DNA of 48,818 bases, taken from contig JAAOMT010000611.1 of NCBI GenBank assembly GCA_016748015.1, forward strand, positions 1 to 48,818, read 5' to 3'. Position numbers and translations under genes: made by a program. How positions within the stretch are numbered: position 1 is the stretch's first letter; each line of letters opens with the position of its first letter. This document shows positions 3,120 through 46,715 of this stretch, one piece after another. The notes beneath the pieces were generated by a model. It was not told the origin of the DNA, ran no database searches, and worked only from the letters and a program-made list of their open reading frames with translations. The DNA is from Geosiphon pyriformis uo1 (lineage: Eukaryota > Fungi > Glomeromycota).

Positions 3120-6100
3120 ATGTCAAGTGAGGACTTGAACAATATGAAACGGAGAAGAGTTGCGAGAGCATGTGATACTTGTCGACGCAAAAAAGTGCGT
3201 TGTGACGGTGTTCAGGCTGGTTCCGATCCTCCATCTTGCACAAATTGTAAAGCTTACGGATATGAATGGTATGTTTTTTGAATGAATCAAGGTTGGACTG
3301 TCGTTTTTTTCATTTAAAAATTTTCAACTAAAAAATATAGTTTGTTTGTTTGCTTGCTTACTTACTTGTAACCTATCTTTTTCATCATTCCAATTTATTA
3401 CGCTAAAATTTATCTTCTCAAGCTCATTTATTGATGCTCCAAAGAAACGTGGGCCTCCGAAAGGTTATATCGAAGCTTTGGAAACAAGACTCCAACGAAT
3501 GGAATCAATTCTTGGAGGTTTGGTTCAATCAGGAGATTTACCAGAAGGAACAATTTCTTCAAACCTTGAATGGATTAATGTGAACGAAACCAATTTCACC
3601 GGAAAGAATCAACAATCTAAAAATGGTTCCAGCCGTAAATCCTCCAATCCTGATGATGATAGCTCAAAAGATGAACCAATATATACACCTCGTTCAAATT
3701 CCTTATTATCAGCTCATCGAACAGATGGCTATGCCCGTAAATCAAAAGATCGAAAAATCGGCTATTATTCAAACTCAAACAGTGATAGTTCCGACGAGTC
3801 ATTGTCATCCGATAGTAAAGAGGGTTTTGGCGATAATTATGATTTGAATGATAGTATGGGACAATTGGCTATTGATGAAACTGGCCAGACAAGATATTTG
3901 GGAAATAGTTCTGGAATTTTCTTACTAAGAGTTACCAATAGAGTTGCAAATGGACAAATTTTTAAATTTCCTCGTAATGGATGCGAAGTTTACAGGAAGC
4001 CAAACAAACCGACATCATTCGAACTTCCACCTCGTGAATTATGTGATGAAATGTTGGATGTTTATTTTAAACAAGTTCATCCTTTCATACCTATCATTGA
4101 TCCGGAAGAGTTAAGAAAAAAATATCGATCCATTTCGAATAATTCTTCCATACTCATATTGCTCTTTGCAATGTTCGCAATGTCAAAGAGATTTTCAGAT
4201 CCACCGCTTGTTCGTAGGAACCCCGATGACCCAGTATATGCAGGCGAGTCCTTATCCGCTTTTTGATCACAAATCTTTCTTTACAGTGTTTCCCTCGCTT
4301 CCTCTAATTACTTTTTGTATATACATCTTTGAACTTTTAGCCGATTTATTTTTTGAATCTGCCAGAGATTTACTTAAAGAGGAATTCGATGAAGGTCAAC
4401 TAAGCACAGTTCAAGCTCTATTGTTAATGTCTGCTTACCAACAAGGCGCCAAAAATTCTAGGTCTTGGATGTATACTGGGATGGCGATTAGAATGGCACA
4501 AGATATGGGATTACATCGTGATTCCGCTAAATGGAGCCTTGAACAGACAAATGGGGAAGTTCGTAAGCGTGTATGGTGGAGTTGCTATATATCCGATAGA
4601 TTTGTTAGTGCCGGATTGGGACGAGTATGTGACATCAAAAATTTTTTCTGATTATCTGCATTTTCAATTCATTATTATCAATCATTTTTAATCTGATTCA
4701 AATATCTGTCTCTTTTTATTAATAGCCGATGATTATCGATGATTCAGATTGTGATGTTCCATTGCCTACACCCGGTCTTTTACCCGGTGATGAAATGGAA
4801 GTTGTGGATTGCTGGGTTCGAGCTATAAAACTTGTTCAAATCCTTGGCCGGGTTTTAATGCATATTTACGGTATAAAATCAAAACATACAACACATGCAG
4901 CTACTGATTCTGTTCTTGCTGGTTTAGACCGTGAATTGAATTCTTGGCGGGAAGCTTTACCGCCAGACAGCCAATATGACCCTGGAAAGTCTTTTAGCGA
5001 CCTAAAGAATCAAAGATATGGTCTCTTGCATTTAACATTTTACACCACTCAAATTTTATTACATCGACCTCATATAAGAGGGCCAAAATCGAAAGCTCCA
5101 CCTTCCTCAATACCCTCGCTTACCATATGTACAATGGCCGCGAATAATATAACGCACATCACGTATCGGAGCATGAAAGAAGGTCAATTAAAAGTTTTTT
5201 GGAACTTTATCCTTCACTTCTTCTTCACCGCTTCCATTATGCACGTAATTAATGCATTAAGCGGAGACGATCGGTTCCGTGAGGTGGCAAAACATGGCTT
5301 ACGCATGTCATTGAAATGTTTGGAGTATTTGAAAAAATATTGGTTCTCATCAGAAAAATGTATAATGGTCATAAGAGATTTATTATGTGTTCGTAATATT
5401 AGTCTGGATGGATTCAATCCAAATGGAACTGAACATTTTGATCGAACGCGTGGCGAAGATGCAAATTTCGCCAAGGTAGATGGAAACATTGTGAGTTTTT
5501 TACCCGACAGTAGTGAGTTTGATCCTGCACCAAATAGTCAGCATGTTGTAAAATTTGCCCCATCTCCAACTTCTACAATATCTACATCTTCGACGATACA
5601 AACTACGACGAGAGCAAATGAATACAGCACCGCTCTAATGCAACAAATGGCTGCTGCTGCCGCCGCCGCAACCGTTGTCAATTCTCAAAATGAAACGAAT
5701 AATCACACTATTCCCAACACCTCATTAATTTATCAACAGCAACATCATAATCTTCATTACCAAACATCACAGACGAGGAGAACCACTGCACCCATTGCAC
5801 CTTCACAACGATCTCCATCAATTCCTTACGAAAATTCTCCATCACCAGCTTCTTCATCCTCATCCATTTCGAGTTTCATACCATTCGGCAATGAATTTCC
5901 AAATCAAGAAAATGCGTTTTTTCCTCCAAATGCAGATGCATTTTCGGCAGATATAGCCCTAACTTTTGATGATGAGGATCCTCTTGGGAATGGAAATCCA
6001 TTCTGGGATATACCGTCTAATTTCAATTGGAATGAATGGACAGATTATGTGAACGGGATGCAAGGATTACGATTTGCGTCTAACGGTAACGGTTTAAATT

Positions 6101-21512: not shown

Positions 21513-22168
21513 TTAATCATTCAGGAGATAGCGAGTGGTGAGTTGGTAAACGGCAAATAGAAAGATGAAAATGATCAGTATTGCTGCGATCGGATTTGGA
21601 CCGGTGAATGGGTTTTGGATTGAATTTTTTGATGAAGGTGATCGAGTTGCGGTTGAAAAATCTGATGGTGGTCTAGTACTTGGCTATGTAATAATTTATG
21701 AATAAAAAGTTTTTTCTTTAGATTGACTGACTGACTGACTGACTTGAATCATAACTTGATTATCATATTAAATGTAGAAATTAATTGAAGAGTTTTCTAT
21801 ATATCTTCAATAATTACAAATCCGTACAAAAAATTTATATTAAAAATAATCACCAATCCTAATGCTTCTTCAGCTTCTTTGGACATATCTTCCAAAACTG
21901 GCCTTACTTCTTCATACCCTTTTAATCTTTGCTTAAACTTAATTTCAATCTCTTCCTCTGTTTCATCTTCGTTTTTAACCATAACAATAAATCCATTGGA
22001 GTCTATACCTGTCATTCGAGCACTAATTGCCATTTTAGCTTCACCAAAGTATTTTGCGTAGGCCAATAGAGTAAAAGGATGTGTATTCATATAAGTTATG
22101 AGACGGGCCGAATGTGATGAAAGTGGATCTGTGATGACATTGGAATTTTTAGATTTTTGACGATGCAT
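21513..22168 (-). CDS. DUF2470-domain protein with prematurely truncated C-terminal membrane region; exons 22168-21854, 21683-21513
   Basis: RLITYMNTH...LLAYAKYFG...SARMTGIDSNGF...IEIKF...EVRPVLEDMSKEA matches the DUF2470 pattern. A phase-0 intron, TTG|GTGATT...CATAG|CCA, leads to exon 2, which has one transmembrane segment and then TAA. Confidence 0.75.
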
Positions 22169-22204
22169 CTTTGCCAAGTGAGAAGCAAAAAGAATAGATT
22201 GGTA

Positions 22205-22249
<45 letters not shown>

Positions 22250-22308
22250 GTGGTTGTGGTGGTTGTGGTGGTAGTTGTGGTGGTGGTTGTGGTGGTGGTG
22301 GTGGTGGT
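22205..22308. repeat. Compound (GAT)n(GGT/TGT)n microsatellite upstream of the DUF2470 ATG
   Basis: Visible triplet array; it reads as poly-His on the minus strand. Confidence 0.9.
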
Positions 22309-23127
22309 AAAGAATCTCGAGCAATTTTTTTTTTTTTTTAAATTTAATAATCTCTAATTGTAATACCACCTGTTTGTCCACCAACCGAATTCAAGAACGT
22401 TTTTTGTAATACCTAATACTTTGTTAGATCATTCCGTATATATGTTGGATATCAATTTCTCCATTTGGAAGTTCCGGGATGTATATCGTATGAAAAAGTG
22501 CTAAACTTGATGACTAATCAGAAAAGTTCACAATCTCAGCTTTTATCTTTTTTGGTTTTTCGGATCATTCATTTGGTCCTTAACCCATTAATTTATCTAA
22601 AATCCAGAAGTTTTTTTAGGAAAGATTATACAGATTTTTTGAAGATTAAAAAATACAAAAAATGCATAATTGATTTAATTTCAAAATTTAGCATAAACTT
22701 TTAGTGAAAATATCAGAATAGAATAGTGGAAAAAGATTTATTGAAAGAGTTTGTTATTAAGAATAATTTGATAAATTTATTAAATAAATATTTAAATTCA
22801 AAATAAATTTAATTTTTAATCCATATTTTTTAATAATATTTTATTATAAATTAATTTTTAATTCATTTTCAGTAATGTCATTCACCACCAAAATTTATTT
22901 TATTCTTTTATTTTCGATTAATTTGTTTTCCATTAATTATTATTTTTTTTTGGTCTTTCATATTTTCGAAAGAAAAGATTTAAGGTATTAAAAAAAAATA
23001 TTTTGAAATTGGTAAAAAGTAATTCAAAGTGTGAACTGAACTATCTTCTCAATGGAAACAATTTTGAACAGCTAATAATTTTAATATAAAATCTATATTA
23101 CACGATAACAGACATTCGGTAAATGTT

Positions 23128-23369: not shown

Positions 23370-24053
23370 ATGAACAAGTCCACATTATCTTCATCATTAA
23401 AACGAAAAGAGAATAATTTTTTTTCGAATACATATAATCGATTACCATCTGCAAAATATGATCTTCCACATGATGATGAAGAAATAGATAGGAATAATTT
23501 TCATCATTATATGATTAGAGCTAAAACTGGAACACTTTTTGAGGCCCCTATTCATGAAAAATTGCGAGAAGGATGTATAATTTTAGATGTTGGGTAAGAA
23601 ATATTTTTGAAATATTTTTTGAAAAAATATTAATATATTTTAATCCAATCTTTTCTGGGAGGAAACTAAAACTATTTTTATCAAAAAACTTAATAATAAT
23701 ATTTACATACATTATTAGTTGTGGTCCTGGCACTTGGATACTAGAAATGGCAGCAGAATATCCGAACTCTAGCTTTGTCGGTTTCGATATCGCGAAAATT
23801 TATCCACAACAAATAAAACCAAAAAATGTTCAATTTTATCAGGCAAATGTTTTAGAAGGTATAAAATTTCCAGAAGAACATTTCGACTACGTGCACATGC
23901 GATTTCTCATTCTAGGAATTCCACAACGTTCTTGGCCATCAGTCATTGACGAATTAATACGAGTAACAAAACCTGGTGGTTGGATTGAATTAGCTGAACC
24001 AGAATTATTATCTACCGTTTTGACCCCAAACTATCGTAGATATTTAACAGCTA
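23370..24053 (+). CDS. Class I SAM-dependent methyltransferase, LaeA/TAM-like; exons 23370-23593, 23719-24053; 3' end lost in gap
   Basis: Motifs include YDLPHDDEEIDR...HY, motif I LDVG|CGPGTW (spliced GG|GTAAG...TAG|T), FVGFDI, FDYVHMRFL and ELIRVTKPGGWIELAE. Donor A|GTAAGT at 24054 is followed by poly-T and the N-gap. Confidence 0.9.
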
Positions 24054-24108
24054 GTAAGTAAAAAAAAAATAAAAAATTTTTTTTTATTCATTTATTTTTA
24101 TGAGTACA

Positions 24109-24822: not shown

Positions 24823-25550
24823 AAAAATCATGATAATAAGTATTTACCATAAAGGGAATACATAACGTTATTCCAATCATTAATGATGATGATGAAAAAT
24901 TTTTTTGTACCCCCCCCCCCCCCCCCCCCCCCCAAAGCCTAGACTGTACGAAAATTGTGAAATGTATGAAAAATTTTTTTTTTTGTTTTATTTGTTTGGA
25001 ATACGAAAATTACATGCATTTAGAAATTAACATGATCCAGTCTTGAAACAATAAATAAAATCATAATTTGAGATTTTTTTTTGATTTTTTAATTAATTTT
25101 TCAATAAAAAAAAAAGAATTTTAAAATACATGCATATTGATGAGTGAGCTAAATTTTTGAAGCAGATGAAATCAGGTGTATGAACACCACATATATTTAA
25201 ATCATTATATGAGAAATGTTTTTAGCATATGCCTCTACCTACCTACCTGTCACGTCATAAAGCTCGTAACGACGCTTTTTTTTTTCACATTTGTAATAAC
25301 ATACCCCTTGTGAAAATATGGGAATCATTAAAGGAATTGCACTTATTTTAATGCAAAACAGTTTAAATAATAGAATTTTCATATGAATTTTATCAATAAT
25401 AAAAGGAAAAACAGTAGTATCTGGTTTTCAGATTCAAGAAAATAGAACAAGGAAAATATTATTTATTATTTAAAAAGTGAAAAAATAAAATAGGATGATT
25501 CAATTCTCAATATAATAATAAATATAATATTTTTCACATTTCTAAGCTCT

Positions 25551-26864
25551 TCAATCATTATTTCTTGAAATTTCTTCTTCTTTAAACATGACATGGTCGA
25601 AATTTGGTCCCAAATGCTCATCATCAGAATGTGATGCTCTATAATGTTCTATTGCTTCTTGCCAATTTTTTGCCGGATATAAGGCGTTATGGTAATGATT
25701 TCTGGCATTGCAATCCTTAAAAAAGAAATTTTCGATCAAGATTAACAAATTATAATTTTAAAATTAAGATAGAAAAAGAAAATTTACCTCATTCTCATAT
25801 AAAGTAGTCGTATGGTAACATAAATAAATTTTGGGATCAACACAATCACATGGAGGCTCTATCCAAAACTCCTTTTGAAAATGTTTATATAATATCCTAG
25901 GGTCCGCCTTATGTTTTTCAGTGGTTTCTTTTCTGCTTCGATCAGAACCCTCAATTGGAAAGTTAGGTATCCAATCATCACCATGAGTCACTCTCCAAAC
26001 TTTGGTTAACATTGCTTCCGTATTATAAATAAATAAATAAATAAATAATTTCCTACTCGTGGCATACCGAAAGTAATAAAAGTTACTGATGCTTCCATAT
26101 GCACCCTCTTATATTAAAGTGCAGCAAATAAGAAATCAAAATAAATAAATAACCAATTTTTTGTGGGAAAACTTTTTTTAAAAAAAGTAAATTTCATTAT
26201 CAGCTCCAATACCGTAGCCTGTGAATGTATTGTTTTGTTTTTTAAATATTTTTAATTTTTCTCAGAACTTTATACACAAATTTCCCAACTTTTATAGAAA
26301 ACTTTGGTGACCAACGCATGTTCGAAATATGGGTAAGAAATGAGATCCAATTTTAGACTTTCAAGTTCGATTGTGGTCCTTGAGAATATTGCTATACATG
26401 AATTTTTGGGTTGATTTGACTTGTGAATGTTCGTTGATGATTGCTTTCCAATTTATAATTTTAAATACTAACCACACACTTTGTCTGCTAAAAAATGGTC
26501 TGTAAAAACTTGGAAGACTTGACAAGATGCTTTCCATGCAAATCGCACTTTCTGCTAATTCTTTTAAAATACCCTCATCGTCAACAACCCTTTTTATAAA
26601 GTACATGGTCACCTCTCGTTATCAATGAAACTAGTGGTTAGTAGTGACATGGTAAATTAAAGATTCTGAAATAAAAAAAGAAATAAAGAAAAAAAAAAGA
26701 ATTGCTCTAGTGAAAATATGATTCTTTTTGAGGAAAGCGGTATCTTAAAACACTTTGGCTTTCTTTGAAAACTTACTTGTTGTTCACCTTCAACTATGAT
26801 AGGATGAAAATAAGTAAAAAATAATTTAAATTAAAAAGAGAAAAAATAAACATTTAAATCTCAT
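25551..26864 (-). pseudogene. Pseudogene copy of lipase-like gene A (34437-35842)
   Basis: Same ATG context, but CAA->TAA at codon 13, several deletions/frameshifts, and the GT donor after GYGIGA mutated to AT. The last exons are nearly identical to gene A. Confidence 0.88.
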
Positions 26865-27320
26865 GTTTAACTAGATAAAGCATTTATAAATTTCAAAAAG
26901 TTCCCAAGTATATTTAGAAAGAAAATTTTCTCTTAATGGAAAATTAGTATTACTAATAAAAAATAAAAGTGTAATCTTTCATTTTTCTATCTCATTTCTC
27001 TCAATCAACGCACTTTTTATTCTGAAAAATTGTTTACCATGTAATCAGAATTGTAATTGTGTGTGTATGTGTGTAAGAATAAGAGCTATATCATTCACGA
27101 GATCGAAAATACGTTCAAGCAAGAAAATCTCCACAAAGTAAATAAGAACTTATTTGTTTCTGATTCTGATCTGATTTTTTAAAACAACCAATTTAATTTA
27201 ATAGCAATTCGGGATTATAGTATAAATAAGAAAAGGTTTCAAATAGAGAAATTTCTATGAGTCAGTCAGTCAAATTAGTCTTGAATCCAATCGAAAGAAA
27301 TTTGGAAAAACAAAAAAGTA

Positions 27321-27434
27321 ATGTTCAAAGAATTTGTAAGGACATTAAAGCTAGTAAAGCAAATTTAGTTCGGGCAGGGTATTGTTATTTAAAAGATATA
27401 TATTCTTTGGAGCAAAGTAATGAATGAAGGAATA

Positions 27435-27469
<35 letters not shown>

Positions 27470-28718
27470 GAATGATTGATTCATTCGAGATTAATTTTTT
27501 TACACGTTATATTTTCTCATATCCTAATCCATTCAAAAATTCTCTTAACAGCCAACTATAATATTTCCGTTGTCTCTATTAACCATGACAATTCAAAAAT
27601 TACATTTGCTTTTGCTGATATCACTGAAAGTAATTTCAAAACATTGGCAGAAACAACATCCTTCAGATTTCCGGTGGTTAAATTTCCAGATGTAGCTGGT
27701 GCAGGCGTCGCATTTANNNNNNNNNNNNNNNNNNNNNNNNNNNNNNNNNNNNNNNNNNNNNNNNNNNNNNNNNNNNNNNNNNNNNNNNNNNNNNNNNNNN
27801 NNNNNNNNNNNNNNNNNNNNNNNNNNNNNNNNNNNNNNNNNNNNNNNNNNNNNNNNNNNNNNNNNNNNNNNNNNNNNNNNNNNNNNNNNNNNNNNNNNNN
27901 NNNNNNNNNNNNNNNNNNNNNNNNNNNNNNNNNNNNNNNNNNNNNNNNNNNNNNNNNNNNNNNNNNNNNNNNNNNNNNNNNNNNNNNNNNNNNNNNNNNN
28001 NNNNNNNNNNNNNNNNNNNNNNNNNNNNNNNNNNNNNNNNNNNNNNNNNNNNNNNNNNNNNNNNNNNNNNNNNNNNNNNNNNNNNNNNNNNNNNNNNNNN
28101 NNNNNNNNNNNNNNNNNNNNNNNNNNNNNNNNNNNNNNNNNNNNNNNNNNNNNNNNNNNNNNNNNNNNNNNNNNNNNNNNNNNNNNNNNNNNNNNNNNNN
28201 NNNNNNNNNNNNNNNNNNNNNNNNNNNNNNNNNNNNNNNNNNNNNNNNNNNNNNNNNNNNNNNNNNNNNNNNNNNNNNNNNNNNNNNNNNNNNNNNNNNN
28301 NNNNNNNNNNNNNNNNNNNNNNNNNNNNNNNNNNNNNNNNNNNNNNNNNNNNNNNNNNATTTTAAACCTGAATTTTGGATTGATGACGAAAAATCGGATT
28401 GCGAGTGTACAGAAGATGTTTATCCGAAGGTCTATAAATGTTTTAGCAAGCTTTCATACGATGAACATCCGGTAGGAATTTAAAATTGAATATTCCTTAA
28501 AATTTAACGTTCATTTATACTATTATTGTTGTTTATACTCTTAGGAATGTAATGCTCGTAAACATGATTGGGAATTTACGAAAAAAATCAAGAGTGATGG
28601 AAAATCTGATGCCTTCCTTTATGGTCCTTATTTTGGAAAAAGGATGAATAATTGTGAAGGCTTAAATATAAGTAATATCATAGTAACACAACGCAAACGG
28701 AACGATAAATGGTATTGA
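27321..28718 (+). pseudogene. Pseudogene copy of lipase-like gene B (36463-38026), interrupted by N-gap
   Basis: A ~262 nt deletion in exon 1 removes the hydrophobic leader and shifts the frame (stop at codon 16). Downstream exons are near-identical to gene B, with a different last few codons (RNDKWY*). Confidence 0.8.
27717..28358. other. Assembly gap (N run)
   Basis: Run of N; its flanks match 37112 and 37661 of the paralogous copy. Confidence 1.
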
Positions 28719-30959
28719 AAATAGATAAACTTGTTTATTACTTGGTTTCTCCATATGAAAAATTAAATTTTATTGAAGCTTTAAAACCTGGCTATCTTCA
28801 AATGTGGTTGATAATTTTAGGGGTTATCTCGATATAATTTTCTAATCTGAAAAAATATTTAGTTTATAACGATATTTCTCAAAGAAAAGCTTGGAAACAT
28901 CTAAAATATTCATATTTTTTAAAGGTTAATACTTTGTGAAAAAAAATTATTGTATTCTTGGAATAATTCCTTCATCTAATATGCCCTGACAGTCTTATTG
29001 AGAATATGATATAAAATTATTGGAATTCTTTGAATTGTTTGCACCCTTTGTAAGTGATATTTTAATGTTGCCCACTCAATCTACCTTTTTCAAATGATTG
29101 GATAAAAGAGTGAATTGAATTTATGAATAAAATATTTTCTATGCTCGTTTGATACAGGGAAATGATCATGTCCCACAGTTTTCCCAGAGTTTATTATTAT
29201 TATTATTAGGTTGGAAACACGGCGATGTAGCTTTTACGTTAAATGAAATATTTATTTTGGTAAATTGATTGTTAATTTAGTATATTCAATACAATGAAAC
29301 TTATTTGCATATTAAGTTAAAACATCAAAATGAGTGCACTGAATATTTTTATTTTTATTTTTAAATAGGATTTTTCAGAGGGTTTCTCTTTTGTTTATAA
29401 ATTTTTTTAGTGGTTTGTAAACGTTTTAGGAAAAAATCAAGCTTAAATGATTTAGCAAGAATTATGGAGTTTTGGATTTCGTTTTCTATAAGATTTATTA
29501 AATTTTTTTTCCAAGAAACGATAAAAGAGTTATAACTAGCATCAATGAAAAAACATAACAATAGAATTAATCAATTTTGTTTGAAACAATTGGTTATTGC
29601 AAATAAACTATTTCAATATCTTGAAATTATAACTTAAAAAAAAGCGAAACTTTGTATAATTATATGCTATAATGTCTGGGTCAGAAAATCAAGAGGTTAA
29701 GATTTTCAAATCATAAAAAGATAAATTCGCTTTTATTTAATTTGATTCTACATTGTGCTGTCTATGTTAGAAATTTTCACTGGCAGGATATTCTATAACC
29801 TACTATTTCAAGTCCAACAATAAAGTTAAAAGAGTAACATTTTATCTATTTTAAACATAAAAAAAAAAACTTCAGAAATCATAAGCTGTTTTAACAAAAA
29901 GCGATCTTTGAAGTTTAGGTTTTTATCATATGCTAAACACATAAAGTGTCTTTAGCATACTTTTGTTTCTCCTGCTAATTAAAATTTTAAATTTTAAACA
30001 GTATTTTAGTTTTTTATTCTGCAATATATATAAAAAAACTTTTAATAACTATTAAATATAGAAACTTCGAGAGACTTGAAAAGATTGAAAATTCTTCAAA
30101 CAAAATAATAAAATAAAATTCTTTTAAACAATTTTTTTAATATTAAATCATTTTTTTCTTAAATATTTAAACATTGCAAAACTTTCTTTTTTTATTGACT
30201 CTAATTGAAATTAGCATCATTCAAAAAAATCTAATTTTGTATTTTAAACAAATAAATTTCTTTAATTAAATCTAACTGACAGAGATATTGAATGTGGTGT
30301 TAACTATAACATCAACTAGAATTAATGGGGACAAAATCAATTGTAGCTCTATAAAACTTGTTAAATATTTAATTCATTTAAATTATTATCTGCAAAAAAA
30401 ATAAATAAGCTAGAATTCTTTACTTTTCTTATAAAATATAGAGCTGTTAATATTATTGCAATAATAAGATAAAATTTATATTCTCCTCAAAATTCACTGA
30501 AAACCCCTATTTGTTAAAAAAAGTATTATATGATATGCAATTTGATAGAAATTAAATATTTATGATTAATTTAACTTGGAACCCATATGTGAATCAATGA
30601 ATCATTTATTTTGAAAGATACTAATTTCAAATGGAATGGTTAAAACTAATTGATATTTAAGTGCTTCAAAAAACTACTTTTTGGTAATTCAAAGCTCTAT
30701 TTGATTCAAACGTAAAAGTCCAATCAATGTGGCTTAAAATTAACAACAACCATTATGTATTTTAATTAGATCGCGGCATTCCCTTCTCGCTTACTCATTG
30801 TCATAATTTAAACAAAATGAACGAAAGAATAATTTAACCTTTAAAATGAATTATACACAAAATTATTTTCGATGATAATAATAATAATAATAATAATAAT
30901 AATCTTTATAAAAGAGATCTGAAACATCATTGACACGAACGAAATATATATCTTTCTAA

Positions 30960-34436: not shown

Positions 34437-35842
34437 TCAAAAAACCGAATTTTTTTCTCCTTCCAGGTTTGGACGGCAAAACTTAAACATGACATGGCTG
34501 AAATATGGTCCCATATGCTCATCATCAGAATGTGATGCTCTATAATGTTCTATTGCTTCTTGCCAATTTTTTGCCGGATATAAGGCGTTATGGTAATGAT
34601 TTCTGGCATTGCAATCCTTAAAAAAGAAATTTTCGATCAAGATTAACAAATTATAATTTTAAAATTAAGATAGAAAAAGAAAAATTACCTCATTCTCATA
34701 TAAAGTAGTCGTATGGTAACATAAATAAATTTTGGGATCTACACAATCACATGGAGGCTCTATCCAAAACTCCTTTTGAAAATGTTTATATAATATCCTA
34801 GGGTCCGCCTTATGTTTTTCAGTGGTTTCTTTTCTTCTTCGATCAGAACCCTCAATTGGAAAGTTAGGCATCCAATCATCACCATGAGTCACTCTCCAAA
34901 CTTTGGTTAACATTGCTTCCGTATTATAAATAAATAAATCATTTCCTATTCGTGGCATGCCGAAAGTAATAAGAGTTACTGATGCTTCCATATGCGCCCT
35001 CTTATAGTCAAGTGCAGCAAATACCGCAATAACTAAGAAATCAAAATAAATAAATAAATAATTTTTTTGTGAGAAAATTTTTATTGAAAAAAAGTAAATT
35101 TCATTACCAGCTCCAATACCGAAGCCAGTGAATGTATAATCATAGAAGTTGTTCCAAAGCTTGTTTTGCTTTTCAAATATTTGTAATTTTTCCCAGAAGT
35201 TGATTTCACAAGTTTCCCACCTTTTATAGAAAACTTTGGCGACCAAAGCATGTTCGAAATATGGGTAAGAAATGAGATCCCATTTTACATTTCCCCCATC
35301 TGTTGTAAAATAACTGAAGTCAAGTTCGTAAGTGCTAAAAGCGATTGTGGTCCTTGAGAATATTGCTATACAAAATTTTTTGGGTTAGATGAATGCTTTC
35401 CACTTTAGAATTTTAAATACTAACCCCACACTTTGCCTGTGTTGTAACCTGCCAAAAAATGGTCTGTAAAAACTTGAAAGACTTGACAAGATGCTCTCCA
35501 TGCAAAATCAGCACTTGATGTTAATTCTTTTAAAGTAGCCTCATCGTCAACAACCCTTTTTACAAAGGTTACACCTGCATGGTCACCTCTTATGGCAATC
35601 GCGTCATCAATAAAGCTAGTGGTTAGTGGTGATATGGTAAATGGATGAATCTGAAAGAAAGAAAGAAAAAAAAAAGAATTTGCTTTAGTGAAGACATAAT
35701 GCTTTTTTGAGAAAAGCGATATCTTAAAACGCTTTGGTTTTCTTTGAAAACTTACTCGTTGTTCACCTTCAACTATGATAGGATGAAAATAAGAAAAAAT
35801 AATTTGAGATAAAAAGAGGAAAAATAAACATTTAAATCTCAT
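34437..35842 (-). CDS. Secreted class-3 lipase-fold protein A, nucleophile Ser replaced (GFGIG); exons 35842-35756, 35650-35425, 35365-35108, 35032-34689, 34616-34437
   Basis: Signal-peptide-like N-terminus. Motifs are FTGFGIGA|VIAVFAALD, ITFGMPRIGN, RVTHGDDWMPNFP, YKHFQKEFWI and HMGPYF. All four introns are GT-AG with matching phases. Confidence 0.88.
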
Positions 35843-36462
35843 GTTTAACTAGATAAAGCATTTATAAATTTCAAGAAGTCCCCAAGTATCTTTGGAAGAA
35901 AAATCTTGCAAATCGCGTTATATTAGAAACAATGTGTTTTCGGCATTTATTAAACTAGATCAAGATTCTTGAACGAAATTCAATTTTTAGCAAAAACTTT
36001 CACCTAAATAAAATGCTTTCCCTTGATGGAAATTAATATTAACTACAAAAAATAAACGAGTGATCTTTCATTTTCTTATCTCGTTTCGATTGCCTCTCTC
36101 TCAATCAGCGTGCTTTTTATTTTGAAAAATTGTTTATCATATGATCAGAATTATGTGTGCGTGTGTGTGTGTGTGTGTGGAAACAAATACATGTACATAC
36201 TTGGGAATAAAAGCGATACAATTCACGAGATCGATAGTTAAAAATACGTTCGACTAAGAAAATCTCCAGAAAGTAAATTAGAAACAAGATATGCGAATTT
36301 AAAACAACCAGCTTGATTAATATTAATCTGTAAAACATTCCCTATGATAATATAAATAAAATTTTTACAAATAGTGAAAATTCTATCAGTCAGTCAAATT
36401 AATCTGGGGAATACAATCGAAAGAAATTTTCTTCAGCAAAACACTTTTGGAAAAAAAAAGTA
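35843..36462. promoter_or_regulatory. Putative bidirectional promoter region between divergent lipase-like genes A and B
   Basis: ~620 bp between head-to-head ATGs, containing a (GT)n tract. It is partly conserved in the duplicated copy (26865-27320). Confidence 0.45.
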
Positions 36463-38026
36463 ATGTCCCAAAAATCCCTAAAGACATTAAAGCACACCTT
36501 CTTATTAGTGAAAATTATTTTCATTATTATTATTTTTTGGATCCTTTTAATACATTTTTTATCTCGACAAACAAATTTAGGATCAAATAACTCAACTCCT
36601 ATTGATTATTATTTTAATTACTCAAAGAAGATTTTATCAGCCAATAAAAATTTCAAAGAACATTTTCACGTTTCAAGACAACAAGGCTTTGATTATGATA
36701 CAAGTTCCTTTGCAAAAACTTTAGTTGAAGATAGGAGCGTTTTAAACCTACTTGCTAGCAAAGCAAATATAGCTTGGACAGGCTATTGTTATTTAAAAGA
36801 TATATATTCTTTGGGGCAAGGTAATGAATGAAGGAATAAATCAATCAATCAATCAATCAATCAATGAATGATTGATTCATTCGAGATTAATTTTTTTACA
36901 CGTTATATTTTCTCATATCCTAATCCATTCAAAAATTCTCTTAACAGCCAACAATAATATTTCCGTTGTCTCTATTAACCATGACAATTCAAAAATTACA
37001 TTTGCTTTTGCTGATATCACTGAAAGTAATTTCAAAACATTGGCAGAAACAACATCCTTCAGATTTCCGGTGGTTAAATTTCCAGATGTAGCTGGTGCAG
37101 GCGTCGCATTTACTTACTACAGTAAATGGAAAAAACGTGTTCAAAAACTCTTTTTCGATCGTTTAGAATCATACTTGATAATACCCGCAAGGAAATTAGA
37201 TTATTCTGAAATGGAAGTGGATTATTCTTATTTTGAATTCACCGGCTACGGCGAAGGCAGTCGTAAGTATTTTATTTGAAAGAAAAGTGAAAAAGACTGG
37301 TATTATCCTTTTCTTTTAATTTTTTTCTTTTAATTAGCATATGCAATTTTTGCTGCTCTTGAATTTGTGGAAAGGTATCGACCGAAAAAAAGACCAATCA
37401 TTGTTACTTTTGGCCAGCCGAGAATGGGAAATGAGATTTTTGTTGCTTATGCTCAATCTCAACTTGAGGTAAGATATAACCTTTTCGAGATTGATTTTTA
37501 AGATGGAATTCTGAATTCTGAATTCAGATTTTTAGGGTTACATTTGTGGATGATTGGCTACCCAATATGCCAATACGAGGAAAAAAAACTTTTGTGAAAT
37601 GGAGTGATGAGAACGAGAGACCAAAAAATTCATTCCCACTAATATATGAAGTGTATAGACATTTTAAACCTGAATTTTGGATTGATGACGAAAAATCGGA
37701 TTGCGAGTGTACAGAAGATGTTTATCCGAAGGTCTATAAATGTTTTAGCAAGCTTTCATACGATGAACATCCGGTAGGAATTTAAAATTGAATATTCCTT
37801 AAAATTTAACGTTCATTTATACTATTATTGTTGTTTATACTCTTAGGAATGTAATGCTCGTAAACATGATTGGGAATTTACGAAAAAAATCAAAAGTGAT
37901 GGAAAATCTGATGCCTTCCTTTATGGTCCTTATTTTGGAAAAAGGATGAATAATTGTGAAGGCTTAAATATAAGTAATATCATAGTAACACAACGTAAAC
38001 GGAAGGGTAAATTCAAGACCTTATGA
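36463..38026 (+). CDS. Class-3 lipase-fold protein B with N-terminal signal/anchor, nucleophile Ser (GYGEG) and catalytic His both replaced; exons 36463-36820, 36948-37262, 37338-37468, 37528-37773, 37847-38026
   Basis: Motifs are FTGYGEGS|PYAIFAALE, VTFGQPRMGN, RVTFVDDWLPNMP, YRHFKPEFWI and FLYGPYFG. Introns are GT-AG and in phase. Confidence 0.88.
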
Positions 38027-39295
38027 AAAATTTTTTATTGTATTCTTCGAATAATACCTTTCATCTTCGTCCTAATTACAATAGCCTGACAACAGTCTTC
38101 ATTTATACTTCTAACTCCTTTTCATAAATGTTCATTGAGAATATAATATAAAATTTTTGGAATTCTTTGAATTGTTTGCACCCTTCGTAAATGATAGTTA
38201 AATGTTGCCCACTCGATGTGCCTTTTTCAAATGATTAGATAAAAGAATGAATTGTAGATTTTCTATGCTCGCTTGATCCATGAAAATGATCATGTCCCAC
38301 ACTTTTACCAGAGTTCATTATTATTATTAGATTGGAAACATTCTGATTCTGAAATCTGTATTGGGTCATTTAATAATTGTGAAGATTGTATTAATCGTTC
38401 GAACCTAGAGTAACAATTAGAAGAAACGAATATGATTGCTTTTCCATGCTAGCCATATTTTGATGTTATTATTTTCAATAAAAATGCCAAATTATCATGT
38501 TTCCGATCGGCTACAAAAATTATGTTTCAGAGGCTCAAAAAAAATATTAATATTCGTGGAAGAAACGGTACATTTATAATAATTATAATTGGATATACAC
38601 GTGGGAACTTTATTTTCATTATTTAACCGGGAAATAAAGTTTTAATAATTAATTATTGCACAAGATTTTAAGATACTCGCAAATCGGTAACTCCACACAA
38701 GTGTTGACTCTTTCGATCAGCTTCCTTTTATCACGCTTAAAGATAATGGTTCACTTCAAAGCTTCAAATTTTTGGCCGAGAAAAAAATAGGAATTCTTTG
38801 GAAAGAACATATTTCAAAAGTGACAAAAAGAAAGATTAAAAAGGGCTGTTGAATCTGAATTTGATATTGGTTATTGGGCACAATATCCTAAACCTTTTCA
38901 AAACAAGGTATTCTAATAAAGGTTATATTCTTTTTTAAAATAATTTTCTTCAAAATTTTGAATAATTCATTAGTTATTAAGTTAATAAAAACACATTTTA
39001 AAAATTGTATTGTAATTATTAAAATTTAACAATTTTCAAGAAACTTGTTTTGATGCTTTCGTAAAATAAACATCCTTGAATTCATTCGCTTCAAAATTTA
39101 ATTCGAGTTTTTTGTAATAAGAATTATTTCATTCATAATTTGCACATTAATACTGGAAAATATTTTTTATTACGTCACAAAAATATAATCTAGAAACAGC
39201 AATCAGTGATACTGTATCTTTGAAAAGTTTTCCCGATAAGAAAATAGATGATCCTTAAATATTGTTAAGTTTATCGATTCTTGTTTGATCGAGCT

Positions 39296-40794
39296 ATGGC
39301 TAATTTTTCAGTTAAAGCCTTTTATTCCATCTTTTTAATTTTCATATTTCAATTTTTTTTTCAAATAAGCCATGATGTTGAATTGCGAAATATTTTTTCT
39401 CGGCCCTTCTTAACTCAAAAATACAAGCACCACCAATTCTTTCACTTTCTACTTTCAGTGACAGGATCTCAAAATGATAGGGCTGATTTTCTCTTGAGGA
39501 GAGCGACATCTCAGTATCCTAAAAAAAGGGCATATAACATTAGCCATAAAGAGGAACTGATAAAATTAGCAATGACAGCTATATATACTAATGCAGCTTA
39601 CTGTGATCCCCATAATCAAATTGGAAAGTTGGTAGAAAATGGGAATAAAGTTACTGGTACAACATGATATTCAGTCTTTTTCATATTTAATTCAGCCATT
39701 TTCCAAAATGGAAGATTAAGAAAATTTTTTTTTATTTAAAAGCTGATGTAGGAGTAGATGAACGAGGTCGTGTAATGGTTGCATATTTTAAAGGTCCTCA
39801 GTTAACAAAAGCAAAATGGATAACCAGAAGAAGCCAACTTGTACCATATCGTGTACAAGGAATGGTGACAAACGCGTTAGTTAAAGTGGATCAAGAATGG
39901 TTTACGGATGTGTCAACTATGATGAATGCATTAGTAGAAAAAATAAATGATAAGATAAAAAGAACTAGGAAAATTTTTTTTTGTGGACATGGCGTTGGTG
40001 GTGGTAAGGGAAATTTTGAGATTTTTTGATGAGCAATAAAAGGTTGTGATAATGGATAGAGGGTTGTGATAATGAGTATGGGTGGTTTTGATGATTGAAT
40101 CTGAAAAAAAATTCCATTAATGTTAAATAATAATGTAATGTCAATTTTTACACAATTCAAAAAAACTCCCCTCCCCCCCCCCAAATAGCTTATGCAGCAA
40201 TAGCAGGTTTATCATTTGCAATTATGAAACTTCTCCAACCATCATCATCATCTGTCGATCCAATTGATCTTTCAATTTATACTTTCGGTCAACCAAGAAT
40301 CGGAAACACAATGTTTGCTAGAATGATGAATGAATTTGTAAAGATTACAAGAATAACTCGTCTAAATGATTACGTTCCACACTTTCCTCCAGTTGAAAGT
40401 GAGCAATCAATTATGCTACATCATGAAAGAGAAATATGGATTGGACCAAAAGATTGTGATTGTACTCGAGATACACTTATATATAATGACGACGTTATAT
40501 GGGATTGCGGAGAATCAAAAAAAAATTTTGAATTAAATCTAGTCCGAATGAATCAATTTATTCAAGAAAAGTTTTGGACTCCTGGTGATATCTTTGCGGG
40601 GGAGAGTCAGGTTAGTTGAAAATAATAATTCTTTTCAAAATTCATGAATTCAAACAAATCTTTTAAATTTATTGAATTAATCAAAAATTTAGGAATGTAA
40701 TTCTGGACAATCGATCTCAGAGGAAAACACAAATAGAGAACATTATGGTCCTTATTTTGGTGTCATAATGAATGATTGTACTGGATATATATAA
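39296..40794 (+). CDS. Secreted class-3 lipase-fold protein C, nucleophile Ser replaced (GHGVG); exons approx. 39296-39656, 39743-40003, 40189-40610, 40693-40794
   Basis: Signal-peptide-like N-terminus. Motifs are YTNAAYC, VMVAYFKG, FCGHGVGG|AYAAIAG, YTFGQPRIGN, RITRLNDYVPHFP, HHEREIWI and HYGPYFG. Introns are in phase. Confidence 0.9.
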
Positions 40795-41894: not shown

Positions 41895-42070
41895 CTTACT
41901 ATTTTATTATCTAATTCTAAGAATATTATTCAAAGTTATAAGAAAAAAGGGGGTAAAATGACGAAGTATGGTATTGTGGCAAAGTTAATAATTTGTGTTG
42001 AATTGTAATAAATGAGTATAAAAAATAGCATATTTTTATGCATTTTATTCTCTTATACAAATTTATTATA
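41895..42070 (+). repeat. Dispersed repeat copy 2 (similar to ~12060-12260), at the start of an AT-rich relic block
   Basis: See 12060-12260. Confidence 0.6.
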
Positions 42071-43874
42071 ACTAAAATAGATTAAATATTGCTCTTAAAC
42101 ATGTTTTTTTATTTCAGATAATTTTTTTAAACAAAAAATATTTAATAGTTTTATAAATATTATTAATACAAACGATTAATATTCTTTTTAAAAAGACAAT
42201 AAATTGGACATGATAACTGAAATTATACTGTTTGACTGTTTAATTGTTATTATTAATATAGTATAACTACAGCTAAGATTTTTATTTTAATAAAAAGTTA
42301 AAGAAGTTATGAATAAGATTAATATTTAAAAAAAGTGACATCTGTTTAAAAAAATCATTGAAATTAGTAATAAACAAAAGGCTTTTTGTAAAAACTATGC
42401 ACAGCAAATATTATATGCTTTAAATTTCTATATTTTGTTAAGATATTATAAATTATAATTTAATTGCTTTATTTTATACATTTTTATCACATGTTTGTTT
42501 ATTAAAACCAAAATAATATTGCTTATTAATAATATAAATTTATTAAAAATAATGCACAAAAACATACTGTAAAAATTTATTAAACAAAAAAAATTTAATT
42601 TCAATTTTTACAAAACTTATACAAATTCTAATAATATTGTTTACTTTATTTAAATTTATTTATTTATATATAAGCTTAAAAAAGTGTCTACTTTTTAAAA
42701 GTCATTTAATTTTTTAATTCTGATATTTTTGCTTATACTATGTTTTTATTAAATTTTTTTTTGTTAATTGTTATTTTTTGTTTTATTAATATTTTCTTAT
42801 TTTTATTGAATGTTCTAAATTGGTCATTTTTTGTGTGTTTCTTAATTCAGTAATTTTATTGTTATAACTTGTTCTTAAATTTTTATAATTAATGCTATCA
42901 GTTTTGTATTTATTAATGTTTTGAATTTAGCTTTTTTTTCAATACTAGTTTTTTACTAATATTATTATAACAACCCAACTATAAGCAAAAATGTTTTTCT
43001 TGATTAATATATTTATAAAATTAAAAAAAATCAATATTTGATAGTTTCGCTAAATATAGTCATTTTAGATAATTATTTTTTATTAAAAAAGCAAAACAAG
43101 TTATGATTTAGCATACAATTTTATAAAATAACTATGTAATTGTACTTGTTTTAAAGTTGAATTAATATCTTATATTTAATAAATAAAAATGTTTTATATT
43201 TCAAATTAAAATATAAATATTATAATTAATATTAAAAAAATAATAAATCTGATAATAATTATAATATTATTTTATTAATATTAAATTCTAAATATGATTA
43301 TTAAAAATAAAGTGTTTTTTTAACAAAAACTTTTAATATGTTTTATAAATAGCAAATGTAAAGTTTATTTTAAAAATTTAATTTGTATACAAATTTAAGT
43401 TTAAAACCATATAAATTATTTCAATTATTTTTATTTTAAATATTTAGTTATTAAAATATACTTAAAATTAACTATTAAAATAATAAAAATAACATTAAAA
43501 AAGTACTACCAATTTGCAGAAAAAACTATAATAAAAATTTTAACTCTATTTTATCTTATTTTTTAAATAGAAAGTAATACCACCAAGGAATAACATAATA
43601 TTTTCCTTTATTAACTACAAAGTAATTTTTATTTTAAAACACTGAATTTTATAATTTTATATACTTTATTTAAAATACATATAAAGTCCTAAATTTCAAT
43701 ATTTTTATTAGATATATTATGACCAAAATCTTAAAATATTTTTATTTGAAATTTTCTAAAAATTACCTATTTCAAATTAACAGTTTCATTTTTATGTTCA
43801 ATATTATTAATATGATTAACATATTACTTATTTTTTATGTTAAAATTAAAGATTTATAGAACTATAACATGAAT

Positions 43875-46715
43875 AAATACTATAAATATTAAACCTATTT
43901 ATAAATAACTACTCTTTTTATAAGCATTTTGGTTTTAAAATCATACTTTATTGTTTGTATTATATTTAAAATTATTTAAATTTACTTTAAACAACCAAAT
44001 CTCTATTTAGATTTTATTATTTATTATTTTATATTTTTAATTTAGATTAAGAAGCTTGAATAAATTATTTATTTTACAAAAAAACCACTTTAACGAAAAA
44101 TATTTTTTTTTATATAATAAAGTATTCAAAATGTGTAATTTTTATAAGAAAATCTATATAATTATGAGCTATTTTATTATAATTAAATATTAATATTACA
44201 CAATTATTTTAGTATAACCAAAAAATTAATTGTGAAAAATTTTACTGACTTTATGATGAAGCTTAGATAACAAACTTTATTTTTTCTAAAGAGATTTTAC
44301 AATTATTATGTAAAGTTATTATTTATAAATAATATTAAAATATAAACATCTGTATTACAAATTACCTAAAAACACCACTTTAACAAGACTGTAATAAAAT
44401 ATTATTTACAAAATTATTAAAAGTGGTTATATTATTATCTACAATTTTTAATATTTTAAATTTTTAATAATAGTTTTTTTTTTTCAAAAAAAAATAAGTT
44501 TAAATTTTTTTTAACTGCTCTAAATGCATGTAAATATTACAGCTTAGTAGATATTATTAAACTTGATATCATAGATTATGAGATTTATATAAAAAAAAGA
44601 TTGATTTTTAAAAAGACCAATTTAAAAAAAAGGTAAATTATATGAGAATTTGTAAAAATAACTGGTTTCTTGTTTGAGATTTTATTTACAGTAATCAATT
44701 TGCCAATAATTTATTTACATAAAAAATATTAGTATATATTGAATAAATTAAAAAGTTTTTAATTTTATTAAAATTTATTTTTTCAGCTCAAAAAATAATT
44801 ATAACATTTGAAATACAAAATGTTATCAATTAATATACCATTACATTAATTGTTCTATAAACAACTTTATTATTTCAAAACACAGTATTAGTATAATATA
44901 TATTATCTAATATTTTGATAAAATAATCTGATTTAAAGAAAGTAGTTGATATATTGTGTTGAATAACTGTTTTTATTACTTTCTTCTTACATAAATTAAA
45001 AAGAACTGTTGCCAATTATTTGAAATTATATAAAATTATCGAAATAATTTATTATTATATATTATAATAAATGCAAAGCTTTAGTTTTTTTTGGTGTTTA
45101 TATAAGATAAACTAACTATTTAACTATTATTGAAGTAGTATTTAAGTACTTAATTTGCTTATTTAAGTTTTTTTATATTTTTTTATATTCTTCATTAAAT
45201 CTGTTGCTAAATGTTTAAAGTGTTAACAGATAAACATAAATATTATTACGAATCTTTATCTTATTTAGCATGAAAATTAAACTGCTTATTATTTTTATCA
45301 ACTCTTTATTAAAATAATAGTATAAGTTAGTTAAAGTTGCTAACAATATGCCAAATATTTTCTTAAGTGCTTTATATTATTTGCTTAGTAATTATCTTTT
45401 CTTTTTTTATTATTATGACATATAGTAATATTTTGTCAGAATTTCTAAAGCTATTGTTCACAGAAAGACCTAATTATAACTCAGTATTTTTACTATGATT
45501 GCAAAGTGTAACATCAGCAATGTTTACATTTTTCAATTTTTTTGAATGTCACTTCTTAATCTTTCTTATTAAATTATTGACATTTTTTGGATGCCCAATG
45601 TGAAAGTCACCCAAATTGAGAAAAAAGCTGATGAAAGCTTATGTTAAGCTTCTCAAAACTTATTTTTTCACAAATAATAATGAGTGGTTCCTCTATAGAA
45701 TAATATTAATAATATGTCTACTTTACCACCAGTTAGTTACATTTGCAACTGAGCATTTATTTGAGGTGTAACATTTTATCGAGTAGTAATATCTCTTACT
45801 TGTCTAAGAGTAGTGTCTTTTGCTCGTGCAATAGGTTTTTTGGACATTGTTTAGAAATATAATCTAATATTAGTCATCTGTTTTTTCTATTTATCCAAAT
45901 ATATATTGAATCTCAACTTTTTTCATTAAATTCTAGCAAATTCTTATAAATTTTTAATCTTAATAAGGTTTTGAATAGCATAAACAACATAATTTTCAAT
46001 GAAAAAATCTCTGTGTAATCATTTATCATAAACGTTTCAAAAATATAAAAGCTTTGTATAGCATAAGAATTAACAATGAGTATTCAATGCTTATATAAAA
46101 ATCAAATTATTCATAGAGATTTTGTAGGTTTTACACTTTGAGAATCTGATCTTGATCTTTCAAAAAATTTAAAGTTTAACCAATAAGGTGAAAAGTAATT
46201 TAAATTCAAAAACACTTGCAATATTTTGCAATAATTTCCCTTCCTCTACCACCAACTTTACTTAAATAGAAATATACTTAATTTTAATTAATTGGTCAGG
46301 TATAAATAAATTATTTTGACAATTACATTTCGAGTTTTAGCAGCAGATACAAAATAAAATTAGAGATTTGGACAACGGATTATTCAAACAGCCAAAAAAT
46401 GCCACAAAATTTTAGCAACTGCACTTCTAAATTAATCACATTACCCAGTAATTTAATAACTTTTTATTTAGTGAAATTATTTATTGTAATTAATCTTTAG
46501 CAAAGGATTTTATATAAAAGGAATGCTTCAAGCTCAATTACTAAATAGTTTGCTCATGCAAAAATTTATGATAAAAAGCAGTTGCCTGTATGCATCATTT
46601 TTTAATTTCATTACTGTACATGTTAAATGGAGTGAAATGTGTGGTGATATTTTCATATGTTGGGTATCCTCGAAAATCCTAGAGTCGTTGACGGACATCT
46701 TCAAAAATGTGACTC
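43875..46715 (-). repeat. Inverted duplication, copy B (partner ~15470-18390), heavily G:C->A:T mutated
   Basis: Its reverse complement aligns collinearly with copy A, with several short deletions. Confidence 0.9.
44375..45847 (-). pseudogene. Hypermutated relic of the CRN-like gene (paralog of 16362-18031)
   Basis: ATG at 45847 (atgtccaaaaaacctattgcacgagca, cf. 16362). Recognisable only by DNA alignment with copy A. Confidence 0.75.

Follow-up and report, generated by a model that had tools for sequence, protein, structure and literature searches.

Fungal class-3 lipases such as those of Rhizomucor miehei, Rhizopus and Thermomyces lanuginosus are secretory serine hydrolases in which an FRG[ST] motif supplies the oxyanion hole, and replacement of the nucleophile Ser by Gly or Ala leaves them essentially inactive. 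Related folds are known to have taken on binding roles. Neuroligins, cholinesterase-like adhesion proteins and dipteran yolk proteins have the alpha/beta-hydrolase fold with Gly in place of the GxSxG Ser; they belong to the COesterase and pancreatic lipase families, are animal proteins, and are encoded by small numbers of genes. The plant proteins EDS1, PAD4 and SAG101 contain non-hydrolytic domains derived from Lipase_3, SAG101 lacking the triad; these intracellular proteins have an EP domain at the C-terminus, assemble into defined heterodimers, and have few members per genome. Enzyme homologues that have lost catalysis usually occur singly or in small groups. The fungus Geosiphon pyriformis is sister to the mycorrhizal fungi and houses intracellular Nostoc as an obligate partner, to our knowledge in the only fungus-cyanobacterium endosymbiosis. 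Glomeromycotina are fatty-acid-dependent, and Geosiphon, as far as we know, has no fatty-acid synthase of its own. Here we describe three genes, A, B and C, on a 48,818-base contig of G. pyriformis that was analysed whole (the window). Each encodes a class-3 lipase domain with Gly at the position of the nucleophile Ser, and together they represent a very large Geosiphon-specific family for which non-hydrolytic binding of lipid or fatty-acyl ligands is the most likely role.

The three genes occupy positions 34437-40794 of the window, which is AT-rich (25.5% G+C). All are spliced, with open frames and GT-AG borders at every intron (Table 1). Scores against the Lipase_3 profile PF01764, which has a gathering cut-off of 22 bits, were 45.4 bits for B, 66.6 bits for C, 38.3 bits for A exon 4 and 27.4 bits for B exon 3. 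An earlier reading of the DNA without database searches (the sequence-only reading) had proposed three intact lipase-like genes with Gly at the nucleophile position; direct codon reading, the PF01764 scores and profile alignment all bear this out. A profile of 70 family members aligned to the solved lipases of Rhizopus, Thermomyces and Rhizomucor with E-values of 1e-36 to 1e-31, and in this alignment the family Gly falls on the Ser of GHSLGG in the Rhizopus and Thermomyces enzymes. The fungal lipases (3tgl, 6qpp, 6a0w, 1tib) and the Geosiphon family share the fold and the order of motifs: TFGQPRxGN; RVTxxxDxVP, which holds the catalytic Asp; HxxExWI; a C-terminus rich in Cys; and HxGPYFG, which holds the catalytic His. 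They differ in that the Geosiphon family has Gly for Ser, an N-terminal extension of ~80-100 residues, hundreds of copies, and replacements of FRG[ST] (by YFxG, FST or FAD) and of VHxGF (by VDxxW). At the FRG[ST] position, A reads AFSTY, B reads AFADI and C reads YFKGP, against aFRGs in outgroup lipases. The sequence-only reading had described this motif as altered in all three proteins and the triad His as lost from B, and was right on both points. Nucleophile Ser and oxyanion motif, both hallmarks of a serine-hydrolase lipase, are therefore missing from A, B and C, and the canonical acyl-enzyme mechanism is unavailable to them.

AlphaFold2 models of C (predicted local distance difference test [pLDDT] 86.5, predicted template-modelling score [pTM] 0.85) and B (pLDDT 84.8, pTM 0.88) had 6qpp, 3tgl, 1usw and 6a0w as their top Foldseek matches, with E-values of 1e-13 to 1e-11. 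The closest structural matches were Rhizomucor miehei lipase, Rhizopus lipase and feruloyl esterase A (FaeA), at template-modelling (TM) scores of up to 0.75; the R. miehei enzyme, with which the sequence-only reading had suggested a comparison, is thus among the best. As modelled, B and C have an alpha/beta-hydrolase fold like that of the solved fungal class-3 lipases. Profile and fold matches to EDS1, PAD4 and SAG101 were weaker, and in sequence the family is far more distant from these plant proteins than from fungal lipases. Unlike them, the Geosiphon proteins end 10-25 residues after HxGPYFG and have secretory-like N-termini. We conclude that the family of A, B and C derives from secreted fungal class-3 lipases of the Rhizomucor type.

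The GenBank protein encoded by the window, KAG9289510.1 (P0001), is identical to our models at all internal splice joins of B and C. However, it wrongly fuses B to C through a spurious intron, and it begins B within a translated (GT)n microsatellite, so that the hydrophobic N-terminus of B is skipped. For gene A, no deposited model was returned by the searches made, in which the exons of A were used one by one, B and C were represented by sub-ranges of KAG9289510.1, and the A subfamily was reached through A-type paralogue proteins. The label given to these proteins in GenBank is "hypothetical protein"; the expectation that annotation would call them active lipases was mistaken. All three N-termini are hydrophobic; those of A and C resemble signal peptides, and that of B has a stronger, anchor-like stretch. 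At least six Cys positions are nearly invariant in the family and align with those of canonical fungal lipases. Judged by these two features, A, B and C are probably secreted or membrane-anchored proteins.

Transcript evidence came from contigs of one public sequencing run. These contigs skip introns at GT..AG borders, indicating that they derive from complementary DNA, whatever the label of the run. They confirmed the joins 34616/34689 and 35032/35108 in A and 39656/39743 in C, agreed with the join of A exons 1 and 2, and also covered C exon 3. We conclude that A and C are transcribed. The sequence-only reading had named a transcript with Ser in the elbow as evidence that would count against it; the A contig keeps the Gly codon. 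The exon joins of our models were upheld at the three positions just listed, with two qualifications. At the join of A exons 2 and 3, the sole spanning contig takes the in-frame acceptor 35299 rather than 35365 (joint 35299 to 35425, CT..AC) and so skips a 66-nt segment that is kept in most A-type paralogue models; this variant may be the product of mis-splicing, a minor isoform or the main transcript. For B, the run contained no RNA contig, which does not show that B is silent.

The genome searched comprised 128.3 Mb in 792 contigs; the published Geosiphon assembly has 129 Mb in 795 scaffolds, and repeats make up 64% of the genome (PMC9453076). A six-frame search with Lipase_3 yielded 783 candidates at first look and 171 scored matches, the majority of these matches covering only the post-elbow half of the domain; across genome searches, first-look counts ranged from 679 to 783. 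A genome-wide elbow tally, of the kind proposed in the sequence-only reading, used the exact pattern G-H-X-x-G-G together with the conserved phase-1 splice donor, with reversed sequences as controls. Position X was Gly in 293 elbows (reversed control 1), Ala in 41, Asp in 10 and Glu in 3 (all reversed controls 0-1), as against 45 with Ser (37 AGY and 8 TCN codons). The pattern excludes the A-type (GFGIGA, ~19 copies) and B-type (GFGES/GYGEG, ~17 copies) elbows. We conclude that the family has ~350-400 elbows and is a very large expansion specific to G. pyriformis. All four Gly codons are used at the elbow position. Other residues found there are Cys (GHCVGG), Asp (10 elbows of GHDxGG type plus GFDSGG), Glu (3) and, in protein models, Arg and Phe; the loci listed with such residues are L003, L026 and genome pattern matches. 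Asp or Cys could act as an alternative nucleophile.

In nearly all loci the exon borders lie at positions 155/156 and 274/275 of the 318-position seed profile. Genes A, B and C fit the family in their non-Ser elbow, phase-1 intron, YA-type helix, TFGQPR, NDxVP and HxGPYFG motifs (with the His exchanged in B). They fall into separate subclades of one Geosiphon-only clade dominated by Gly, and the types are 27-37% identical to one another, in agreement with the earlier description of highly diverged paralogues with open frames. Gene C belongs to a subclade (GHGVGG-AYA) with ~20 close paralogues. When C exon 3 was compared with a library of 1.84 billion proteins, 414 were found. Among the best 150 of these, every non-canonical elbow whose source was looked up came from Geosiphon, and the carriers of GHSLGG were Coemansia, Massospora, Neoconidiobolus, Glomus cerebriforme, Ambispora and one insect. 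Word-indexed searches found Geosiphon "hypothetical proteins" with all three queries, 23 with C, 6 with an A-type domain and 10 with B; the sole other match was one plant lipase (E 2e-7). A metagenome scan with a single protein, of a kind that detects close relatives only, found no relatives, and look-alikes in the ESM Atlas were generic Lipase_3 clusters only. A literature search for Geosiphon and lipase that included full text found no mention of the expansion; the genome paper (Malar et al. 2021) lay outside that search.

A tree of 175 domains grouped all the Geosiphon sequences in one clade against the canonical lipases of other organisms (support 0.64), with Ser-bearing Geosiphon members scattered within it. 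A Ser-less ancestor of this clade required 7 changes by parsimony, against 9; these counts favour an ancestor that had already lost Ser, by a difference of two changes only. The earlier suggestion of an ancestral loss is upheld to that extent, and is complicated by the nesting of Ser-bearing copies. Canonical Geosiphon lipases encode the nucleophile by AGY, such that Gly (GGY) is a single A-to-G transition away. In a tree built from the exon after the elbow only, two copies with a TCA Ser codon (L066, G000:C640:208934-213954; L062, G000:C228:1954-6018), one of which is KAG9293174.1, were nested in a clade with GCA Ala (clade support 0.987, nesting 0.85). Given the canonical AGY codon and the position of the TCA copies inside the GCA clade, the simplest path is from AGY Ser to GGN Gly, then to GCN Ala, and then to TCN Ser. 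By this codon evidence, some copies seem to have reacquired the nucleophile Ser. A further copy, L067 (C667), has TCT Ser and lies beside GGA-Gly copies.

The sequence-only reading had held that the family is maintained, and the data agree. Among the genomic homologues of C exon 3 that were scored, 147 of 150 have no stop. A codon model was fitted to the 20-21 closest paralogues of C, separately for exons 2 and 3. The ratio of non-synonymous to synonymous substitution rates (omega) was 0.37 in exon 3 and 0.61 in exon 2, which bears the elbow, and omega = 1 was rejected for both (twice the log-likelihood difference 118 and 25, respectively). In windows of 10 codons, the elbow and the helix that follows it were the most constrained stretch, with a ratio of non-synonymous to synonymous differences (pN/pS) of 0-0.27 at pS of ~0.4. 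The same scan for diversifying selection found no window with pN/pS convincingly above 1, the maximum being 1.38 in a loop. We conclude that the C subclade is under purifying selection. In Ser-less Geosiphon domains, 155 in all, the catalytic Asp is conserved in 153 and the catalytic His is present in 113 of 126, whereas the top residue of a typical column has a median frequency of 0.33. This conservation keeps open a role for the His-Asp pair, be it ligand binding or residual chemistry.

Table 1. Positions in the window of genes A, B and C, their active-site codons, and the associated intergenic and duplicated segments
Feature	Position	Strand	Details
Gene A, A-type, elbow GFGIGA	34437-35842	-	5 exons, 364 codons; Asp and His present
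Gene A exons	35842-35756, 35650-35425, 35365-35108, 35032-34689, 34616-34437	-	
Gene B, B-type, elbow GYGEGS	36463-38026	+	5 exons, 409 codons; Asp present, His replaced by Leu
Gene B exons	36463-36820, 36948-37262, 37338-37468, 37528-37773, 37847-38026	+	
Gene C, elbow GHGVGG-AYA	39296-40794	+	4 exons, 381 codons; Asp and His present
Gene C exons	39296-39656, 39743-40003, 40189-40610, 40693-40794	+	
A nucleophile-position codon, GGT (Gly), in GFGIG	35120-35118	-	Direct codon reading; RNA contig piece 35108-35249 has the same letters
B nucleophile-position codon, GGC (Gly), in GYGEG	37250-37252	+	Direct codon reading
C nucleophile-position codon, GGC (Gly), in GHGVG	39991-39993	+	Direct codon reading
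Catalytic Asp codon, A	34877-34875	-	Present
Catalytic Asp codon, B	37552-37554	+	Present
Catalytic Asp codon, C	40368-40370	+	Present
Catalytic His codon, A	34517-34515	-	Present
Catalytic His codon, C	40741-40743	+	Present
B codon at catalytic His position	37919-37921	+	Leu
Skipped 66-nt part of A exon 3	35300-35365	-	Only RNA contig across the exon 2/3 join
A-B intergenic region, candidate bidirectional promoter	35843-36462		(GT)n microsatellite at ~36150-36190
Segmental duplicate of the A-B pair	25247-29219		Alignment to the A-B pair
A', pseudogene, elbow GYGIG	~25581-26815	-	Stops and frameshifts
B'	27341-28712	+	Aligned parts 95-100% identical to B (blastn blocks 95.4%, 98.9%); gap of N at ~27717-28358

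Genes A and B stand head to head, their start codons 620 bp apart. The same arrangement, seen as matches to A-type exon 4 and B-type exon 2 lying 1.3-2.3 kb apart, recurs on 10 other contigs (C577, C702, C549, C654, C361, C639, C630, C640, C536 and C641, the last in a tandem form), and adjacent GenBank locus tags correspond to four such pairs (001240/41, 010472/73, 004354/55 and 017623/24). Identity to the window genes is low, at 59-73% for the A-type and 38-51% for the B-type paralogues, indicating that the pairs are old. Both matched exons are open in 9 of the 10 other pairs, the exception being one TAG in the A-type copy on C630. At the catalytic His position, A-type proteins have His, most B-type proteins have Arg, and B of the window has Leu. 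We conclude that A-type (Gly-Asp-His) and B-type (Gly-Asp-Arg/Leu) genes form a recurrent head-to-head two-gene unit.

The A-B pair also has a segmental duplicate within the window. Its copy of A, reported in the sequence-only reading as a pseudogene with a GYGIG elbow, was found at ~25.2-26.9 kb with that elbow and with stops and frameshifts. Identity between A and A' is uneven, at 99% over 34506-34905 and 85-92% elsewhere in A, which suggests gene conversion or an assembly problem. Two further interpretations of the duplicate were rejected. Mutation of A' resembling repeat-induced point mutation is not clearly indicated, since 53 GC-to-AT against 28 AT-to-GC changes amount to a mild AT bias, of the kind that decay would produce where the genome is AT-rich; and B' is not a truncated pseudogene, since the apparent loss of its middle part is due to an assembly gap filled with N. 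Elsewhere on the contig, open reading frames at 3346-4266, 21797-22384 and 23573-24061 match a fungal-specific transcription factor domain (weakly), DUF2470 and a SAM-dependent methyltransferase domain, and positions 42001-46000 have a very low G+C content of 14-19%.

We favour the interpretation that the family has a non-hydrolytic role in binding lipid or fatty-acyl ligands, with a probability of roughly one in two, because the nucleophile and the oxyanion motif are gone, yet the fold, the elbow, the Cys residues and the Asp and His are under selection. Under this model, the change of Ser to Gly together with the altered FRG[ST] motif would remove the normal acyl-enzyme mechanism. The secreted or membrane-anchored proteins would then bind their ligand in the former active-site cleft without hydrolysing it, and the conserved His-Asp pair would help to hold the polar head group of the ligand. 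A precedent for ligand binding comes from two class-3 relatives lacking the nucleophile, whose PDB entries also appeared as fold matches and are, by title, ligand complexes: 1gt6 (TLL S146A, oleic acid) and 2bjh (FaeA S133A, ferulic acid).

Several observations weigh against a binding role or against its generality. Family members in which Ser, Asp or Cys occupies the nucleophile position could be active. The conservation of Asp and His well above the typical column would also fit a remaining catalytic role. An omega of 0.61 in the N-terminal half represents weak constraint. The form of A that uses acceptor 35299 lacks 22 residues, among them the core strand that corresponds by homology to the strand with FRG[ST], and B had no match in the RNA run. 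Finally, the protein databases in which the family appears restricted to Geosiphon contain few Archaeosporales genomes.

The alternative that best survives, although we regard it as unlikely, is that the proteins are still enzymes, in which the His-Asp dyad activates water or a substrate group directly and the Gly makes room at the elbow, so that a reaction, either non-canonical hydrolysis or one of another kind, would be catalysed. Reliance on a His-Asp dyad rather than on Ser is established for some alpha/beta-fold enzymes, cofactor-free dioxygenases among them. The retention of Asp and His in Ser-less domains, the strong constraint on the elbow and following helix, and the occurrence of Asp, Cys and regained Ser at the nucleophile position all suggest a site that is still used. 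However, the FRG[ST] motif is lost too, and Ser-to-Gly or Ser-to-Ala mutants of class-3 lipases have essentially no activity. Moreover, the whole B-type subfamily is intact despite the change of His to Arg or Leu, indicating that His is dispensable at least in the B-type branch, and the conservation of Asp and of HxGPYFG may have structural reasons.

It is also conceivable, if doubtful, that the proteins are secreted pseudoenzyme effectors or decoys directed at partner proteins or surfaces, of Nostoc or of other microbes, with lipid binding beside the point. A huge lineage-specific expansion in arrays in an obligate symbiont, the secretory-like N-termini and the fairly high omega in the N-terminal, lid-bearing half would fit such a function, for which the RALPH proteins of powdery mildews offer an analogy. 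Two reports describe the RALPHs as an RNase-like family that has undergone extreme expansion and is without catalytic residues (bioRxiv 10.1101/2023.05.05.539654; 10.64898/2026.08.13.744637). RALPHs share with the Geosiphon family the extreme lineage-specific expansion, an enzyme fold, the loss of one or more catalytic residues and an obligate biotrophic lifestyle, secretion being predicted for the Geosiphon proteins. They differ in that RALPHs are small proteins with an RNase T1/F1 fold, a plant host and proven effector roles, whereas the Geosiphon family is known from sequence. The Geosiphon proteins are large (~360-410 aa) and retain the active-site architecture except for Ser, and the window scan of C paralogues gave no clear signal of diversification; both observations argue against effector function.

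Improbable again is the proposal that A-type and B-type proteins act as a heteromer, as EDS1 does with PAD4 or SAG101, which would explain why the pair is copied as a unit. The recurrence of the head-to-head arrangement on contigs other than that of the window pair and its local duplicate, its confirmation by locus tags, the open exons of old pairs (38-73% identity) and the combination of a signal-like A-type with an anchor-like B-type N-terminus are what this proposal would predict. Co-duplication of a two-gene segment alone, however, gives adjacency without selection, and several A-type and B-type copies seem unpaired at the thresholds used.

Least likely by far is that these genes are functionless, decaying by-products of tandem and segmental duplication in which loss of Ser marks dead genes: degenerate A', the omega of exon 2, the lack of RNA for B, the aberrant-looking splice form of A and the repeat-rich genome noted above can be cited in its favour, but nearly all exon-3 homologues are open, both exons have an omega significantly lower than 1, conservation of the elbow, Asp, His and Cys extends across paralogues of 25-35% identity, the Gly codon varies synonymously, and A and C are transcribed and correctly spliced, such that wholesale junk is largely refuted as an explanation for the family.

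A wider and more tentative picture, which we consider rather unlikely as a whole, extends the binding role to the biology of the fungus. Hundreds of secreted lipase-derived binders, some of them working as A-type/B-type pairs with one soluble and one anchored member, would capture or sense lipids of Nostoc or of the environment. Single-nucleotide toggling at the elbow (AGY Ser to and from GGY Gly, GGY Gly to and from GCN Ala, GCN Ala to and from TCN Ser, or GAY Asp) would switch a protein between "cutter" and "binder". It is plausible that the family is linked to the Nostoc symbiosis or to lipid auxotrophy; a role at the symbiotic interface is speculation.

The findings bear first on annotation, since the gene models here are partly wrong, with B and C fused and no model of A returned. 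For experiments, the recurrent A-type/B-type head-to-head module provides a defined two-gene unit. The apparent recovery of Ser through Ala codons makes it testable how readily a serine hydrolase can change from enzyme to binder and back. More broadly, Geosiphon has several hundred intact, selected and at least partly transcribed lipase scaffolds without a nucleophile, in a fungus with a unique lifestyle. This family makes it possible to test what use is made of a lipase fold that is unable to form an acyl-enzyme, and whether the fatty-acid-dependent Glomeromycotina may acquire lipid by means of binding proteins.

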